From the NCBI GenBank assembly GCA_026936335.1, contig JAPMXV010000059.1, positions 248,001 to 312,000 on the forward strand: a stretch of 64,000 nt of DNA. The letters are read 5' to 3'. This DNA is from Mantamonas sphyraenae STR306 (lineage: Eukaryota > Protista > CRuMs). Position 1 is the first letter of the stretch. Every line of letters starts with the position of its first letter. Position numbers and translations under genes: made by a program. The notes below the pieces were generated by a model. The model ran no database searches. It was not told the DNA's origin and was given only the letters and a program-made list of their open reading frames with translations. Of this stretch, positions 10,586 through 57,901 are shown in pieces.

Positions 10586-10635
10586 GGCAAAAGAAAAGTG
10601 CTTTGTTTGGATTGGCAGGCGTCCGCAGAGGAACC

Positions 10636-18294: not shown

Positions 18295-18341
18295 GTATGA
18301 CACGCACACTCTTCGTTGAATTCGTTGATCATGTCCATTTG

Positions 18342-21300
18342 CTATGCGAGCGCAAGCAGCCCTCGCAGCATGCGCGCGAGGTCCCGGGTGGGCTGCAGGC
18401 CCAGGACGAGGTGCTGCAGTCCCAGCCGCTTCAACGGGTGGCTAAGCAATGCCATGAGCACCTGGCTCTGGTCTGCAGGCACCCCGGCACGACACAGCAG
18501 CGTAAGCACGACCGCAGGAAAGGTGACGTGTGCAGGGAAGCGGTGCAGCAGCTCCACCTCCTCGTCAGCCTCGTCCGTGTCGCTGTCCACACTCTCCTCT
18601 TGCATGCTGTCCACAAGGAAGCTGATGGAAATCTCACGTTCTCTGCGCTCGCGCTCCTTTGCCTCGCGTTCCTCGGCGCTTTCTTGTTCCTCCCTCTCGT
18701 TGACGACCATGACTGGGCCACAGCCGTCCAGCACATCGGCACTCAGTTGGACCACGTCCTGCAACCACCGACCTTCGCCCAGCGTGCCTGTGTTCACCAT
18801 GCACAGCACCAGCATGTGTGCAAGCCGCATACACTGCCACGAGGTCAGGTCATCTCGCACCAGGATCCCAGGCAAGCTCTGCCCAATCAGAGTTTCCATC
18901 ATCTGAGCCTGTGTGCACCCTCCGTTCCAGCTCAGAAGGGCAGCCACGACACAGGCCATCTCCACGCTGTCAAACGGGTCGCTCGACGTGTACTCGCAAA
19001 GCTGCGAGGCAAACAGGTCGCACACGCGTTGGATGCCCAAACGCTGCACGCTGCTACGCACAGCGCCCATCTTCCTGTCCAGTTGCAGCAGGAACCGCGT
19101 GCGATCCGTGTGGATCTCGCTGATGCATCCGCGCACAAGCTTGGCTGCTGCTGCCGCCTGTGCTTGCTGGCTCTGTTCAGTGCTGCGGCTGTGTTCAATC
19201 CACTGCACCACTGCATTCTGCTCTGCCGACACCTGCTGTCGCAGCAGTTCCAGCAGCCGCGTCAACTCGCGCCGAGCAATGTCGTTGTCCACGCCCAGTG
19301 CACTCAGCAGATGCTTCACCTGAGTGGCGTTTAGCAGTCCATGCAGCCACACGGCTGTGTGTGGCACAGCACGTACCATAGCCATCAGACGGACCACCAG
19401 TGCCTCTGCGCTCCGTCGTGCGCTCGCCTCTGCAGACCGTCGAGTCAGCAGTAGATCCACCTCCTTCACGACTTTGTTCAGTACCACATGCATGCTGTTT
19501 GCCAGCTGCCACACGCTCTTGTCCTTGGAGAAAGAGCGCATCCATCGCACCAACTCTTCGCTGTCTGCCGGTGGTGTGTCCAGCGCTGCCACGTTGACGT
19601 CAAACAAAGCCTCCAACACACTCTCTGCCGTGTTTTCGTGCACAGAAAGCCCTCCATCCAACACAACTTTCTTCGATGCGCGCGTGTCGCTGTTCCCTTC
19701 GTTGCCATTGCCATTGCCATTGCTGTTGCTGCTGCTGCTGCTGCTCCCGTTTGCGTCTTCACCCAGATCCGCGGCCAGGAACCCCATGCCTGCGTCCGAG
19801 TCCTCTTGCAGCATGTCCAGGTTCAGGAACGAAGACAACATGTCCTCCTCGTTCGACGGCTCTTCGGTGACCATCTCTGTGGCAGACACATCCGCCCCCG
19901 CTCCGGATACCGGCGTTCTGCCTTCTCCTCGTGGAGTGCCACCCGTTCCGTCCTGCACATCGCTTCCATCCTTGGCTTCTTTCTTCAACTTCTCGATCGA
20001 GTGTTCTCCTGGCATGCACAGAGTGTTGCGCCCATGCACCAGTTGCCCAACAACCTGCGCCATCCAGTCACACATCTGCTTTGCCCGCTGAGCCCACTCC
20101 CGTTCCTCGCCAGCGTCGCTTTCTCCCCTTCGTCCTGTCCGTGTACATCCTCGTTGCCAAACACTTCTTCGCGGTCGCGCTTGCGGCCAGTCGGCAGCCC
20201 ACTCGACCCGCCCCCGACGTCGTTCATCAGCGAATCAAAGCCATTCTGGCCAAACGCATCCGTGGCAAACGAGTCCACAACCTCTGCAGCTACGGTGGCA
20301 GGCGACATGCGCGGCTGTGCCCTGCGTGCCGCTCGCTCAAGCTTGTTGTTGAACAGTCGCAGCAACATCGTCCTGTTCTTGAGCACCTCCTGCGTGCGTA
20401 GGTATTTACATACACGCACAAAAGTCACCAAAAGCGAGTGCATAGCAAGATGCACGTTGTCAATGCCCGTTTGCTGGGCCTGCTCGTGGCCCGGCAGTCT
20501 GCGTCGCTTGCTGCCCTGTCGCAGCATGCTCGCGCCGTTTGTCGACGTGAGTGCTAAATGTCGCTCGTGGCCCACTTGAGGGCATGCAAGGTACACAATG
20601 TCTTCTACCAGCAGCGTCACAACCTCCAGAAGCCGCCCGTGCGCATTCAGTGCCTCCAAGCACCCCTCCGCCTGCCTTTCCGTCACCTTGACTCCCAATA
20701 GTGTGCTCATGGCTCCGTCAGCATCGGAGGTGTCTCTGCGTATCAGTTCTATCGCACGATCACACAGCTGCGGCGTCCACATGGCTCCGTCGCTTGCAGC
20801 GGCAAACACTTCGCCTGCGTCCATCCCCTGCAGGGCCTCGTCACTGAGTTGCTCCGATTGTATCTGTGCACGCATCTCTTCCAACACTGTGTGCAGCGCC
20901 GTGTGGTGTGCAAACGCATCCTGTGGCAGCAGGCCGGCTTGCAAACATCCGCGAACCACAATCGGCATGCACGTCTGTTCACTTGACCCTATCCTTGCGA
21001 CGGCCAGCGTGTCGTCACGTATGACCTCCAAAAGGGCGTCGACGTGTGCGTTTGTCTCCGTGTCGACAAGCGTGTGCATGGCCACGACGATGCGTGGCAA
21101 CATGGTGCCCAGCACACACCTGTACCTTGCCATGCGGCTGCTTCCTGCCTCGGCCTCGTGTGCCTCTGCATCTCTGTGTATCACCAATGCCGTGGTCTTC
21201 CACACCGTCTCGTACGTTTCCTGCAACGGCCGGTTGCCCAGCCGGTGCAGGTTGAACAACTTTTGTGCGTGCTCGAGCGCGTCAAACACCTCATGTGCTC

Positions 21301-22204
21301 CCAGCACCAGGTGGCTCAAGTACGCTTTGAGTGGGTAGCCCCTGTCCAACGGCTGTGTGATGCTGATGTTGTTTGTGAGCAACAGGCAGCCCGTGTTGAA
21401 CTGGGCCGCGTGGGTAGAGGTTGACGACTCGCTCTCACTCTTCACATAGAACCCCTTGGGTGAACTGGCCACCAGAAACGCTTGCCAGTTGGGCGTGGAA
21501 CACTGCCGCTCAAACACAGCGAGCGCAGGGACGTGGCTGCCCCGTGCCAGCGTCGCTTGCCACTGTTCGGGTTGCTTCCGTCGAGCGACGTACAACAGAG
21601 TGCGCTCCCACGACGAACGCAGCCATCGTTCCACGCACGCGGTCGCCCGCTGTTGCACAGCGTCGATGAGATGAGCACCCTTGGTGTCGCCTTGGGTCTC
21701 TTTGTGTTCACTGTCCAGCTGCGTCGTGGCCAGGAAGAGCTGGAAGGCTTGCAGACATGCGCTGCACGCCAGCCCTGCCCGGTCCTGGTTGCCGCTGCTG
21801 CCGGCGTAGGGCAGAGAAGACTGCCGAAGGGTGTTTTGTAGGGCACAGTGCAGGTCGGTGCTGTTCATGAACGCATACACCAGGTCGAAAACTGCCAGAA
21901 AGTGCAGGGGCTTGTTTGTCACCTCCATGGCCCGGTCACACAGGGTGCACACAAGCAACAGCGGGTCCAGCACTTGTGTGTTCAGTGCATACGCCACGTA
22001 CTCCTTGACGCGAGCACTGGGCACGCGCGGAGTGAGCATCACATCCAACAGTTCGCGTACCACAGCCTGCTGCACTTGCACCTCGTCCTCTGCCAGTCGC
22101 TTGCTGTCCAGATACGCCTGCAGCTGCACACCCCACTCCAACTCGTTGAATCTGCGCTCCACAGCCAACGCAATCGAGGATCGCTGCGCCGTGCCAAACT
22201 CCAT
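18342..22204 (-). CDS. MED24: Mediator tail subunit MED24/Med5-like; one frame break near 20125
   Basis: N-terminus MEFGTAQRSSIALAVERRFNELEWGVQL...LLDVMLTPRVPSARVKEYVAYALNTQVL parallels the MED24 N-terminus (AWKERWSDYQWAINM...PNPLILSYLKYAISSQMV). ORFs 19985..22801 and 18342..20075 join at a G run. Confidence 0.7.
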
Positions 22205-24117
22205 GAGCCAGAGCGAGGTGGGTGTTGGCGAAATACGCGCACTCTGGATACTCGATGGCCAGGCGAATGTCCTCTGGCACAGACGCTTTGGCACAGTCGA
22301 CACCCGTTGTCTACGTGCACGCCTCAACCTCGCCCTCGCCCAACAGGCTCGCGAGAAACAGCTCGCTGCCGAAGCCGAAGCCGCCGCCAATGACGACGAA
22401 TACGACGAACGCGTCGACACGGACGATGTCGCCGACCGTGCCTCTTCCACACACGAGAGCGTGGGCGGAGCGAGCAGCAGCAGCAGTGGTCGAGCCAGTG
22501 GCAGTGTCGGACCCAAGGCTGACGACGACACGTCCTCCAAACAGGCTGACCAGGACCCGCAGCTCGATCTGCAAGCCGTACGCAGCCTGTTCGGCATCCC
22601 TTCCAACGGCGAGCTGTCCTTTGCAGTGGCAAACGACTTTCTCGAGCAGGTGGACGATCCGCACACGGTGGGCGCCTCGTCCCCTGTCCTGCGGCTGCCC
22701 ACCTTGCCCGCGCTGTTCCCGCTCGCCTTGGTCGTCCACGCCGACCTGTTCTTCCTCGCTCTCCCGGCCACAGAGCCCACCGTGGACCTCGACACACCCA
22801 TGCTTGACTTGTAAGTGACCCATTACAACGCAGAGCATGTTCATTGTCGTGTCATCACATGCCTTTGGCCCGTTCGAGGTGATTCGCGACCGGGCAACTC
22901 ACACACACACTCCTCACACTCTCCACAGACCCTGTGTCACCATGGCACTGCAAGTATTGCAGGACATGGCCCAATTACACAGCTCACTTCTGGGAGGAAA
23001 CCTGGATGAGCTCACACGGAGCGCCATGCTTCACTCGTTCGTGTCGCTCATGATGCCCTTTGGCAAGCCGCTGGACACCGATGTGAACAACGTGCGCAAA
23101 ATCATTTCCACTGAATTCCCTCGTCCCGAGACACTGCATGAAGCTAGACCGGCCTGGAAGCCCTATGTGCACCGTGGCAAGCAGCGCTTGGACTTTGCCG
23201 TGCGTGAGAAGCTCAACGTTGTTCTGTACGACCAGGAGGAGCTCACGGACGTGTGTCAGGTCCACGGACGCATCCGGTGTCGTGCAGAGATCGAAGGCGT
23301 GCCCAGCGTCACGCTGGCACTGGCCAACCACACCAACATTGCTCACATGAGCAGCCACCACTGTGTACAGACTCCCGACTCCTTCACAGCCCACCAGATC
23401 TGCTTCACGCCGCCTCTCGACGTGTTCGACCTCATCCAGTACCAGGCTGTCGACGCATACACCTCCCCAATCCTCGGCTTCTACCAGATGATGGAGAACG
23501 AACAGCAGCCACACCAGGTCGACGTCCTCGTCCAGCTCAAGCTCGCCATGCCCGACGTCAACAACTTTGAATACTGCGAGGTCCGCATCCCGTTTGCCAA
23601 TCGCGGTCCCATCAAGTCTCATCAGCTCCAGCCTACAAACGGCTCTGTCTCTCTCAGTGACGACCGCAAGGCCATCCTCTGGTCCATTGGCAACCGCTTT
23701 GCCTCGCGCAACCTCGAAGTTGCCCTGCCGGGCAGCGTGTTTTTCGCATCCGACCAAGATGGCCAGCAAGCAGCCTCAACGTCTTCCTCTTCGTCGTCGT
23801 CGTCGTCGCCCTCCTCCTCCGCGGCAAACAAGGGCTCCAGCTCCGACGACCCGTTTCTCTGCGGGCCCAACAGTTTCATCGAGCTGCGTTTCCGCATGCC
23901 CTTCTCCCTCAGCGAGGTGTCCATTGATCAAAAGTCTGTGTCTGTGTTTGGCAAGAACACGCGTGTGGCCGTCAATGTGGAACACACCCTCGAGTCGGAT
24001 TCGTTTATCATCTGGAATTCGCTCGGGAAGGCAGCTAGCGTGGCCACACCCCCACACCCCAACCAGTGGGTTTCGCTTGACGAATCCATTGTTGACAACG
24101 AGCCCATAGCTCAATGA
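22203..24117 (+). CDS. AP5M1: AP-5 complex mu subunit (2 exons)
   Basis: IRALWILD...WHRRFGTVD N-terminus, MPFGKPLDT, RPAWKP, and mu-homology domain (IRCRAEIEGVP, HHCVQ, FTPPLD, PILGFYQM). Intron 22811-22928. Confidence 0.9.
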
Positions 24118-24143
24118 AAACGAATGATGTGCATTGGCATCCA

Positions 24144-26191
24144 TCAAAAACGCACTGCAGACACTCCTGGGCGCGTTGTGGACGCGTTGCCCACACGCTG
24201 TTTCCTCTGTTTCATCTCTTCCTTCTTGAATGCCTGCTTCAGCGTCTTCTTCTCCTTGCGGCGAGCCTTGCGTGCAGCCTTGACTGCCTTTTTGCGCATG
24301 CGCTTCTCCTCTGCCGATTCGTGCTTGTCTCGCTTCTCTCCCATGTTGACCGACGCCACCGAATAGTCGTCGTCGTCGTCGTCATACTCGTCTTCCTCCT
24401 CTTCCTCTTCCTCCTCTGCCTCCTCGTCGTTGTTTGCCACGTCGCTCTTTGCTGCGCGCCTCGCCTCGAGCACTCCCATGGGCAGGCCGTGCTTGTTCAG
24501 CTTGATCTGCTTCTTGGCCGGCCGCACGTCCTTGATGAGACCCGGGTGGTTCTCTGTGTTTGTCAACTGGCTTGCGTACGACACCACGTCCCACTGCGCA
24601 TCCCTGTCCTTGACACGAATCCACTCATACTCGTCCTCGTCCTCGTCCTCGCCCTCTTCCTCCCTCCCGTCCCCGTCCTCTTTGCCGTTGTCCTTCTTTG
24701 CCTCCTCCTGTGCTTTGGCCATTGCTACTTCCTTGGCCTTTTCGCTTCCTGGTACAGGCACAAGCATGGGCGGTTCGTCTTCGCTGTCGCTGTCGCTGTC
24801 GCTTTCATCCGCGTCTCCGGCCGCTGCCTTTGCTGCCGCCTCTTCCGCTGCATCCTCCTCCTCCAACTTCTTGTACACAGCCTGCACCCCCTGGCGCTTT
24901 TTGGCTTCCTCCTCGTCAAACTCGTCGAAAAGATGCTCCACGGCCTCCAGGCTCAGGCCACCCTTGTTTTCCAGTCGCGGGTCTGTGTCCTCGAATCCGC
25001 CAATGTCTTCCTCGCCGTACGCCTTGTTCATCACCTGTTCAAAGTGCTCCTCAGCAAAACCTCCGTCGTGTTTGTGCGTGCGCGTCGACGCGTACGAGCG
25101 CTCCTCCATGGCAAACTGCCGTCCGCCACCCATTCCAGCCTCAAACTCGTCGCCGCTGCTGAATTCTTCGAACCCGTCGCTGTCGTAGTAATCCAGGTTT
25201 TCGTAGCCAACCATCTTTTCGTATTCGTCCAGCGACATGCCCTTCTTCTCGGGCTTGCCTTCACCGCCGGCCAACGCTACAAAGTCGTCCTCCAGTTCGT
25301 CCACTTCCTCATCATCCACCAGTCCGTCCAACACACCCATCACGTCTGTATCCAGCGTCGGGTCGAATCCCGTCGGTGCTGCCAGATTCAGCATGCCTAC
25401 ATCGGCCTCCTGGGCCAGCGACGAGCCGAACAGGGAGCCCTCGTTTGCCGAGCTGCCCAAGGCCTCCTGAGCCTCGGCAGACACAAACTCGGCGCCGGCC
25501 ATGGGCAGCAAATGCTGCGAGTAATCATATCCGTCGTCAGGAAAGGCATAGTTGTCGTACTCGGCCTTGGAGAGCATTTTGGGCTGCAGGTCGGCGTACA
25601 GCTCGCCGTCGTTGCCCACGTGCTGCATACTACCACGACCCTGCGCTCGTTCATACTCTTCATACACTTCGTCGTCGTGGTAAAAGTACTCTGCGTCAAA
25701 GCCGTCTGCAATCAGGTCCTCCTTCGTCGTCCCGCCCTGTGTTTGCGTTGCAAAATGCACACCGAAAATCCGCGAGTCAGGTTCCGTCCTGCCCCACGGC
25801 CCACGCTGTCTCTCTGACACACGTCTTTACGCCACATGGCTGTACGCCACACACATGGGCCCTTCTGGCGTGCATGGGCTCCACATCACAGATGCGTTGG
25901 CTGGAGAACGGCCGGCTGTGCATGGGCTTCTTGGAAAGCCAGCTCCAAACCCAGCCGTCGCCGATACAACACGCGTGGAGCAGCTGCTTGCACAGGCAAA
26001 CCACAGCCAAAGTGGGAAACAAAGGGCATGCGAACACTCACCTGGCGCTTGTGCGGATTTTCCATCTCAATGAGGACCCGCTGCGAAGCATTCTCGTCGG
26101 CGATGAGCGGGTCGCGTTGCGAACGGTGTCCCACCACAAAGTGAACAGCCTTCTTCTTGTCAATGAACTGCTTTTTACTGTGTTTGCCCAT
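24144..26191 (-). CDS. LTV1: 40S biogenesis factor LTV1 (intron ~26041-25737)
   Basis: KKQFIDKKKAVHFVVGHRSQRDPL, FPDDGYDYSQHL, WDVVSYASQLTNTENHPGLI, ESAEEKRMRKKAVK...KKTLKQAFKKE. Confidence 0.93.
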
Positions 26192-35737: not shown

Positions 35738-35796
35738 GGTGGAAGGATTGCGTGGTCGGGCCGACGCACACGCGCCGGGGACCCCAACACGACGGC

Positions 35797-46340: not shown

Positions 46341-46493
46341 GCGGGAGGGGATTGCGTGGGCGAGCAAGGGCGGATCGCCACGGCAGGCGTTTGGTGGGGC
46401 CAAGAGGTCATGTTCGGGAGAAATGGATGTTCAAAAGGACCATGAGGGTGTTGGGTGGAGCATACGCGCGACCAGAGGCACAAGAAGCAGACA

Positions 46494-49911: not shown

Positions 49912-50832
49912 TCAGTCGTCCTGCAGCATCAGGGCAGCCACGAGGTTGGCAGCCTCTTCGGCCTCGCGTCCAGCACGCTCAGCCTCAGCCTTGAGTGCGT
50001 CGGCCTTGGCCTTGGCACGTGCGGCCTCCTCCTGAGCCTTGGCGGCCGTGTCGGTCAGCACAGCCGACTCGGTCTCTGCGGCGTCGGCCTGGGCCTCGGC
50101 ATCAGCGACCTCCTGGGCACGCTCGACAGCCTCCAGAGACGCCTGCTCGGCGTGGGCCTTGGCCTCCTCCAGAGCCTCCTGGCGAAGGCGGGCCTCTTCC
50201 TCCATGGCCTTCTGGAACTCGATCTCCTCCTCGCGCGAGCGATCCACGCTGTTGCTGGAGCTGGAGTTGTTGATACCGCTTGAGTTGTTGCCACCAAGGA
50301 GCACGGTGACGCGCAGGGTGCCGTCGAGCTCGTTGGCGTAGCGGATGGCCTCGTTCAGCTCGTCGGTGTTGGTCAGCGTGCACAGATCGCCATCCTCATC
50401 CTGGTACTTGACGGTGAAGTCAATGTTGCGCAGCTGGAACACCACAGCGACCTGAGGTGTGCACACAAGCAAGCGTCAGTGGTGGTGATCTTCAAAGGCG
50501 GGCGAAAAAGGAGAGGGTTTTCCGTTTGTCTTTTGGGAGACATCGGGCGACGGCGTGGACATGTGGCAAGAGGAAGCGAGGACGACGCATGCACAGTGTT
50601 GGGTGATGGACGGGGGATATGAGGTGCGATGATGCACGGTGAAGTAGGCCAGTGCGGCCGGATTGGTGACGTGTGGCCGGAAGAAAAGAAGGGTTGGAAT
50701 TCCACGCGTTTGCGGGATTTTCTGTGCAGAGCAGAGACAACGAACCTGGTTCAGGAGGCCCGTGAAGGTCACGTCGTCGGCGGCGGTGAGACGGCGCTTG
50801 TCGTTGTTGTAAGTGAGCTTAAGCTTGACCAT
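49912..50832 (-). CDS. PB1 (type I/II) + Ala/Glu coiled-coil protein, copy 1 (intron 50745-50452)
   Basis: MVKLKLTYNNDKRRL (basic site) and VKYQDEDGDLCTL...ELNEA (OPCA motif), followed by an A/E helical tail. Confidence 0.9.
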
Positions 50833-54100: not shown

Positions 54101-55031
54101 TTAATCCTCAGCGTACTGGTAGGCAGCGACGAGGTTGTTGGCTTCCTCAGCCTCCTTGCCGGCAACCTCTGCCTGGGAACGCAGGGCGTTGGCCTTGCCC
54201 TGAGCGCGCTCAGCCTCCTCACGGGCCTTGGCGGCGGTGTCCGCAAGGACAGCAGCCTCGGTCTCCTTGCCCTCGGCCTGGGCGATGGCATCCTCAGCCT
54301 CCTGGGCACGCTCGGCGGCCTCGATGGCCAGCTGCTCGGCGCGTGCGCGGGCCTCTTCCAAAGCCTCCATGCGCAGGGCGTGCTCCTCAGCCATCAGCTG
54401 GTTGGCAGCATGCTCCTCCTGAGCCTGGATCTTGATGGCGGCGGCGACGTCCTCGGCGCTCACGGTGGACTCGACGTTGGCCTCGGCCAGCACGGTGAGG
54501 CGCAGGGTGCCGTTGGACTCGCCCGCCCACTTCAGCGCCTCGGACAGCTCGTTGTCGCTCTTGATGGTGCACAGGTCGTTGTCCTCATCGAGGTACTTGA
54601 TGGTCACGGCATGGGGGTCCTCCAGCTTGTACACAGACGCAACCTGAAGCCATGTGTTGGGCGCCCACGTGTCAGCCGGCCAAACGAAGAAAAGTGTGGT
54701 GCCCTCCCACTGAATTCTGCGAGGGCCTTTTTTGGGCGGAAGGCCGCTCACACGTGCGGCGCAGAGTGCAAACACGCCGTGCACATGCTCTCGTGTGCGC
54801 ACATGCATGCATGACAGATGTCACACAAACGTGTGCGTGCATGTGCACGGTGGTGTGTGACGGAGAGTGGCCGGGGAAGGGAAAATCGAGCGAGAGCCGC
54901 GTTTGCGGAAAAAAAACATGCTGGCAAAGAGAGCCACGTACCTGCACCTGCAGAGCCAGGAAGGAGGTGTCGTTGGACACGGCCAGGCGGCGGATGTCGT
55001 CGTTGAAGTTGAGCTTAAGCTTGGTGGACAT
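54101..55031 (-). CDS. PB1 + Ala/Glu coiled-coil protein, copy 2, more diverged (intron 54941-54644)
   Basis: MSTKLKLNFNDDIRRL...IKYLDEDNDLCTI...ELSEA. Same intron position and phase as copies 1 and 3. Confidence 0.9.
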
Positions 55032-56851: not shown

Positions 56852-57205
56852 ATGGTCAAGCTTAAGCTCACATACAACGACGACAAGCGCCGCCTGACGG
56901 TGCACGACGACGTGTCGTTCAACTCTCTGGTGAACCAGGTGCGTTGTTGTTTTCCCGAACCATTTTTTCCGCAAACGCCGCAGCCAAGGTGGAATTCCCC
57001 TCTGCCCGGGCCCCTGCGTGGGGCACGGAAGTGTGGATGACGTATGCATGTGCAGCATGGGGTGTGTGGTGTGCGTGTGGTGTGTGTTCATGTTTGCGTG
57101 TGCAGTGCAAGGTTCTTTGATCTGCAGGGTGTGCGTACACGACAAAGAAGGGCCACAACGGCCCCTTTTCTTTGATGAAAACGACGTCAACACAAACGCC
57201 GCCAA

Positions 57206-57238
<33 letters not shown>

Positions 57239-57901
57239 CACGTACATACGTACGCAGACACGTGTGCACTTGCTCGCGCGTGTCTGCATGTGCATGGTTG
57301 CTGCGGAGGATGTGGAGAGGTGGGTGCAAGGGCACTGACACAGAAAATCGTGCGCTCAACTCAACAGGTGTCGGTGGTGTTCCAGCTGGGCAACACTGGC
57401 TTCACCGTCAAGTACCAGGATGAGGATGGCGATCTGTGCACGCTGACCAACACCGATGAGCTGAACGAGGCCATCCGCTATGCCAACGAGCTCGACGGCA
57501 CCCTGCGCGTGACTGTGATCGCAGGTGGGGAGAGCTCCAGCAACAACTCCAGCTCCAGCAACAGCGTGGATCGCTCGCGCGAGGAGGAGATCGAGTTCCA
57601 GAAGGCCATGGAGGAAGAGTCCCGCCTTCGCCAGGAGGCTCTGGAGGAGGCCAAGGCCTACGCCGAGCAGATGTCTCTGGAGGCTGTCGAGCGTGCCCAG
57701 GAGGTCGCTGATGCCGAGGCCCAGGCCGACGCCGCAGAGACCGAGTCGGCTGTGCTGACCGACACGGCCGCCAAGGCTCAGGAGGAGGCCGCACGTGCCA
57801 AGGCCAAGGCCGACGCACTCAAGGCTGAGGCTGAGCGTGCTGGACGCGAGGCCGAGGAGGCTGCCAACCTCGTGGCTGCCCTGATGCTGCAGGAGGACTA
57901 A
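56852..57901 (+). CDS. PB1 + Ala/Glu coiled-coil protein, copy 3, inverted near-duplicate of copy 1 (intron 56939-57367)
   Basis: MVKLKLTYNDDKRRL|...VKYQDEDGDLCTL. Exon 2 is almost identical to the reverse complement of 49912-50451. Confidence 0.9.
57215..57241. repeat. Intronic (CA)n microsatellite in PB1 copy 3
   Basis: About 13 CA units. Confidence 0.9.

Follow-up and report, generated by a model that had tools for sequence, protein, structure and literature searches.

Divergent AP5M1 and helical-repeat protein genes of Mantamonas sphyraenae that probably share one CATG as overlapping start codons

Genes and features at the locus

The window analyzed here is the whole stretch of 64,000 nucleotides from the compact genome of the marine flagellate Mantamonas sphyraenae STR306 (contig JAPMXV010000059.1, positions 248,001 to 312,000 of the forward strand), and positions are those of the window unless they carry the prefix C59. 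The FALCON assembly of this species has 25.06 Mb in 78 contigs (25,061,354 bases by our count) with 59% GC, its genes are mostly mono-exonic, and the AP-5 complex is reported as present (PMC10492846). Two genes diverge from a palindromic CATG (C22202, A22203, T22204, G22205), in which the minus-strand ATG occupies 22204-22202 and the plus-strand ATG 22203-22205, with two bases common to both. The sequence thus confirms the statement of the first-pass annotation that two opposed start codons within one CATG open the two peptides. The genes and the site are as follows.

18342..22204, minus strand: single-exon gene of a 1287-aa helical-repeat protein, identity as MED24 unconfirmed; open for 1287 codons once an indel at 20124 is counted
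22202..22205, no strand assigned: shared CATG with a 2-nt overlap in phase 123:213; two contigs from DNA and one from RNA run across it
22203..22810, plus strand: exon 1 of AP5M1 (AP-5 mu subunit), with an N-terminal extension, a conserved block from codon 11-12 and an acidic low-complexity insert
22811..22928, plus strand: 118-nt intron of AP5M1, GT..AG, joint 22810>22929 seen in run X3 only
22929..24117, plus strand: exon 2 of AP5M1, with the mu-homology domain

Runs X1, X2 and X3 come from one study, probably that which produced the assembly, so that they test the assembly and are not independent samples. Runs X1 and X2 each gave one genomic short-read contig over 18300-24250, which crosses the CATG gap-free with no indel nearby, and a collapse or deletion of the assembly at this point is therefore ruled out. 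At 20123/20124 the assembly is one base short of all three short-read runs, and the missing base falsely cuts the minus gene into frames of 739 aa and about 590 aa. An allele with an in-frame insertion of 3 bases at 22406, which lies in the acidic AP5M1 insert, is present in the RNA run and in one of the DNA runs. From the contigs, the coding score and the N-terminal profile, the two frames are real and adjacent with no DNA missing between them, and the pair is probably a true head-to-head overlap of coding sequences.

Identity of the two proteins

The searches took the spliced AP5M1, 598 aa long by arithmetic, and the minus gene with its indel in separate pieces. AP5M1 exon 2 matches PF00928, the C-terminal mu-homology domain (E 7.5e-31), and 14 homologues at 31-39% identity, two of which are named AP-5 mu; judged by names only, those of the 14 matches assigned to a complex are AP-5 mu and none is AP-1 to AP-4 mu. 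In the alignment of exon 1 with 11 homologue N-termini, R12, W15, R28, T31, V32 and R35 are conserved, and a profile of the homologues' first 45 residues found the AP5M1 frame as its sole match among 1042 six-frame segments (E 2.8e-5), which confirms the earlier assignment of the plus peptide to the N-terminus of the AP5M1 family. AP5M1 is like AP-5 mu in its N-terminal R-x-x-W-I-L and R-F-x-T-V block, in PF00928 and in its identity to the amoebozoan AP-5 mu proteins, while it differs by about 6-10 additional N-terminal residues and the long acidic insert. The initiator Met stands 11 residues before the conserved Arg in AP5M1 vs 1-5 in the homologues. After 22203, exon 1 has no in-frame ATG until codon 200; the first-pass remark that no other Met precedes the conserved block therefore holds, and any ATG start of AP5M1 must lie at 22203 or upstream of it.

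The same annotation had read the minus peptide as the N-terminus of MED24, which no sequence, profile or structure search confirmed. A Pfam scan of the minus protein, whole and in pieces, gave no Med24_N or other Mediator profile, and a genome search with PF11277 was blank, as was its control. Word searches and full HMMER searches of both halves, together with PDB sequences, found no homologue, and four structure searches on two single-sequence folds of the protein gave no support for MED24. Residues 1-132, modelled from the single sequence (pLDDT 62), resemble a generic HEAT/MA3-like helical repeat (Z about 10), with MED24 not among the matches listed, and the Atlas features scored 0.86 for MED23 and 0.84/0.81 for MED24, below the lead level of 0.9. 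We take the first and last residues of the protein to resemble MED24/MED33, as a lead. The search for metagenome relatives of AP5M1 or of the minus protein found none, and an exact look-up of annotated products gave no match. The N-terminus of the minus gene, being without a detectable homologue, is not fixable by conservation.

RNA across the CATG

Run X3 skips 22811-22928 and therefore behaves as RNA. It gave one 4421-nt contig that begins at 19759, passes the CATG and reaches 24236 with the intron as its sole joint, and the run leaves the intron and 18300-18355 uncovered, which indicates low genomic carry-over. The X3 contigs are unstranded and without ends, and they lose rare forms, tips and bubbles; the unbroken path of 31-letter words across the CATG suggests a transcript overlap of about 30 nt or read-through by one gene. 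The possibility raised earlier that both mRNAs are leaderless is disfavored, because such mRNAs would be expected to break a 31-mer contig that in X3 runs unbroken. At its other end, AP5M1 faces a convergent LTV1-like gene with the stops 26 nt apart (24117-24236), and the RNA contig enters the LTV1-like coding sequence by about 90 nt, so that the 3' ends overlap too.

Promoters and leaders

We annotated 264 kb of the contig with a self-trained gene model, which called 81 starts, and trained an upstream model on 75 noisy, self-called starts. The base at -1 was C in 44 of the 81 starts (54%). The upstream regions have an A/C-rich leader and the pattern RCGCRC, which was counted on either strand and clusters between -40 and -21. 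It was present at -45..-15 in 16 of the 81 starts, as compared with 7.9% of the windows within CDS (p 5e-4, for a pattern picked after inspection), and an EM motif search settled on the leader and its A/C-rich composition rather than on the GCGC element. The following features were placed on this basis around the CATG.

22205..22233, minus strand: putative 5' leader for the minus gene, A/C-rich, from the upstream-model score; its antisense is the AP5M1 N-terminal extension
22233..22235, plus strand: ATA codon, Ile11, a candidate decayed former start or near-cognate start
22235..22242, no strand assigned: candidate core-promoter element of two overlapping RCGCRC, 31-38 nt upstream of the minus ATG, in AP5M1 codons 11-14
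22023..22070 (element 22023..22030) and about 22125-22184, no strand assigned: weak candidate AP5M1 promoter elements in the minus CDS, not above null

The 60 nt upstream of the minus gene, which lie within AP5M1 codons 1-20, resemble the usual promoter and leader of this genome: they stand at the 63rd percentile of real starts, a score reached by 2.2% of 696 antisense controls. Under synonymous shuffling, the two overlapping matches of the element at 22235-22242 have P 0.002, and one match has P 0.24. The first 40 codons of AP5M1 have a codon adaptation of 0.44, the lowest of 63 genes (P 5e-5 under synonymous shuffling), and such rare codons are as expected of doubly used DNA. Two plus-strand ATGs (22255 and 22267), out of frame and 13-25 nt past the GCGC element, open a +1 frame of 188 codons through exon 1, and the element, if it fired in the plus direction, would give this frame instead of AP5M1.

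The 60 nt upstream of AP5M1 stand at the 7th percentile and are not upstream-like. Upstream-model and motif scoring of the minus CDS gave no site for an AP5M1 promoter that beat the null, the element at 22023..22030 scoring 3.6 against a 75th percentile of 3.8 for the null maximum. If the start at 22203 is used, the AP5M1 promoter must sit inside the minus CDS. Hence the first-pass proposal that each promoter lies inside the partner's CDS is supported for the minus gene, by its promoter- and leader-like sequence in AP5M1 codons 1-20 together with the unbroken RNA contig, whereas for AP5M1 the promoter was not located. Two further candidate signals were rejected: the shortage of upstream ATGs, which might have pointed to long leaders that overlap, reflects mostly amino-acid content (P 0.07-0.2), and the long open antisense frames, which might have pointed to dual coding, are common in this phase.

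Which start codons are used

We consider it probable that the CATG is a real 2-nt head-to-head start overlap in which both ATGs are used. For this we rely on the sequence, the integrity of the assembly, the AP5M1 homology, the absence of another suitable ATG for AP5M1, the continuous RNA and the coding signal, and four other readings of the same data were weighed.

It is unlikely that AP5M1 instead uses a near-cognate start, either the ATA at 22233 or the GTG at 22218, on a transcript begun downstream of 22203, which would leave a spacer of 13-28 nt and the CATG unused. The ATA stands in a Leu/Met column of the homologues (the initiator Met in one and a Met in another) and ATA makes up 1.4% of the Ile codons here; moreover, the AP5M1 extension looks like the antisense of its neighbor's leader, and low-level read-through could still bridge the RNA contig. 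However, codon 16 is a second ATA, so that rare codons are general in the AP5M1 start region, and the ATG at 22203 has a typical context. The unbroken 31-mer contig also implies the overlap of about 30 nt, and a minus start below the element (about 22233) forces the plus transcript to contain the 22203 ATG.

A long CDS overlap, in which AP5M1 starts at 21927 or 21867 with an extension of 92-112 aa or the minus gene starts at 22597 or 22801, is distinctly improbable. Both frames are open upstream with in-frame ATGs at these four positions, which would only lengthen the overlap as the first-pass annotation had foreseen, and the AP5M1 promoter is unplaced. Such openness is nevertheless not unusual for the phase (16% and 6% of positions), and ATGs are expected as well, since the phase yields an antisense ATG wherever C precedes a Met or Ile codon (ATG 2.9% vs stop 1.6% per codon). 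The extensions are not coding-like (-23.6 nats for minus 22205-22801 and -16.7 nats for plus 21867-22202), no homologue is extended likewise, and none of the four ATGs is preceded by upstream-like sequence.

Trans-splicing, which had been offered earlier as a way to supply one or both mRNA 5' ends, or an intron in the 5' UTR, with promoters elsewhere, is very unlikely. An acceptor-like site lies at 22157-22164, and assembled contigs drop tips and bubbles, so that they could miss a leader. Yet the site scores 7.4 when the median of the null best in antisense windows is 6.8, and it was rejected as evidence for trans-splicing because it is at chance level. In the spliced-leader check, neither a joint nor any of the listed loose ends lay near the CATG (28 further loose ends stand outside the list), and we found no paper on spliced leaders in Mantamonas.

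Least probable of all is a minus start at Met56 (22039), the next Met after Met1, which no homologue of the N-terminus contradicts and which would give an ordinary spacer of about 160 nt, but codons 1-55 reach a coding score of +18.7 nats in the minus frame vs -9.2 in the plus frame (both genes out of training), have ordinary codon use (CAI 0.71) and form three helices of the modelled 1-132 domain, and upstream-like sequence precedes Met1 and not Met56, so that, with the negative score of the extension upstream, the coding signal starts at Met1.

Frequency of shared CATGs in this genome

With C at -1 in more than half of the starts, most starts read CATG, and the palindrome needs no special mechanism; the unusual initiation that had been suggested for this pair is thus not called for. 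For pairs with spacers of 50-100 nt, an in-frame, stop-free CATG at the neighbor's start is expected in 8-15%, and one was seen in 2 of 13 curated divergent pairs. Chance thus suffices for the palindrome by itself, and the oddity is that AP5M1 is without an alternative ATG. In the 264 kb, the gene model called five shared CATGs, and the four besides the focal pair were false: three, next to MetK, ALG9-like and ZNF593-like genes, needed invented introns, and for the plus gene of the REV3-like/TauE-like pair another ATG lies 100 nt downstream, preceded by a proper upstream region. This last pair (C59:87644/87745) holds an unused in-frame, stop-free CATG and so represents a precursor state. As four of five calls in this sample show, a C-rich start context breeds false shared-CATG calls, which is a warning for annotation.

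The well-supported divergent spacers measure 50-200 nt, several of them 50-59, and the focal pair falls outside this main distribution. Spacers of 50-59 nt lie at 10586-10635, 35738-35796 and 46444-46493 (UTP4-like and NAT10-like genes adjoin), two of them with a central ACGCGC-type motif, and we read them as minimal bidirectional promoters. Two inverted duplications were also observed: a multi-exon gene of roughly 4.7 kb is present twice with the same N-terminus (C59:116623-121292, plus strand, and C59:125449-130181, minus strand), and two MetK copies are inverted at about C59:76037-77200 and 91744-92865. Three similar small genes, one of them inverted, are clustered at 49912-50832 (minus), 54101-55031 (minus) and 56852-57901 (plus), and we presume them to be PB1-like.

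Origin and meaning of the overlap

We infer the two transcription starts, the initiation codons in actual use and the order of events from these data. Both ATGs probably function as start codons, reached by scanning on Pol II transcripts from inside the partner CDS, and the arrangement probably arose by capture of a start. Each gene would be transcribed by ordinary Pol II initiation within the CDS of its partner. The capped mRNAs would overlap in antisense at their 5' ends, and normal scanning would lead to the first ATG of each. The minus gene would keep the usual layout, a GCGC-type element about 30-40 nt upstream and a short A/C-rich leader, within AP5M1 codons 1-20. AP5M1, once it had come within about 30 nt of its neighbor, probably lost its former start at codon 11, which now reads ATA. 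The next in-frame ATG upstream, the antisense of the neighbor's C(-1)-ATG, would then have taken over as its start. The overlap would then be a by-product of compaction and of a start context rich in C, and it would be stable as an end point, because neither of the two ATGs could now be lost. The start-loss step is weakened by codon 16, which is also ATA. Compaction and start context, not a new initiation mechanism, probably explain the pair.

If this is true, two Pol II genes have no intergenic DNA between them and promoters inside each other's CDS, and the locus is a natural case for studying a minimal eukaryotic promoter, codon choice that holds a promoter and interference by convergent initiation, in a lineage placed close to the base of Amorphea. 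Further, it is conceivable, though we doubt it, that the pair belongs to a recurring class in Mantamonas, with dozens of divergent pairs on shared CATGs, reciprocal intragenic promoters and transcription that is mutually exclusive or coupled; such promoters would then be regular architecture in a free-living eukaryote.

Comparison with known systems

In our partial literature search, no report was found of shared CATG starts in any eukaryote or of gene overlap in Mantamonas. For Encephalitozoon cuniculi, the portions of PMC2803860 used here state that 120 of 129 CDS overlaps, among them most head-to-head ones, vanished after start correction, while 9 were kept, with signals in the adjacent CDS; they also cite Williams 2005 and Corradi 2008 for overlapping transcription in E. 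cuniculi and Antonospora locustae. As far as these portions go, the microsporidia are alike in having a compact eukaryote genome with control elements displaced into neighboring genes, whereas theirs are parasite genomes of 2.9-5.4 Mb and Mantamonas is free-living, a flagellate with introns in a 25 Mb genome; those portions of the paper describe no shared CATG.

Human 5'-overlapping head-to-head pairs, in which, according to the part of PMC8076222 used here, overlap did not lower expression, likewise have antisense-overlapping 5' ends with possible interference (also INO80E/HIRIP3, in the part used of PMC11890862). As described there, their overlap depends on the TSS used; in Mantamonas it is obligatory since the start codons themselves overlap. 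In prokaryotes, divergent overlaps are rare and favor phase 123:213 (PMC2174442), the phase of the focal pair, and by subtraction between Tables 2 and 3 about 58 of 331 prokaryote divergent overlaps are under 5 nt in 123:213 and would be of the 2-nt type. Many prokaryote divergent overlaps are mispredicted starts, and the long ones are mispredictions (PMC2478687). Prokaryotes differ in their initiation and promoters, the Mantamonas pair being Pol II genes (AP5M1 is spliced) with scanning initiation. Shared starts of this kind appear unusual for a free-living eukaryote, and they would be an extreme case of the gene crowding already seen in microsporidia and bacteria.
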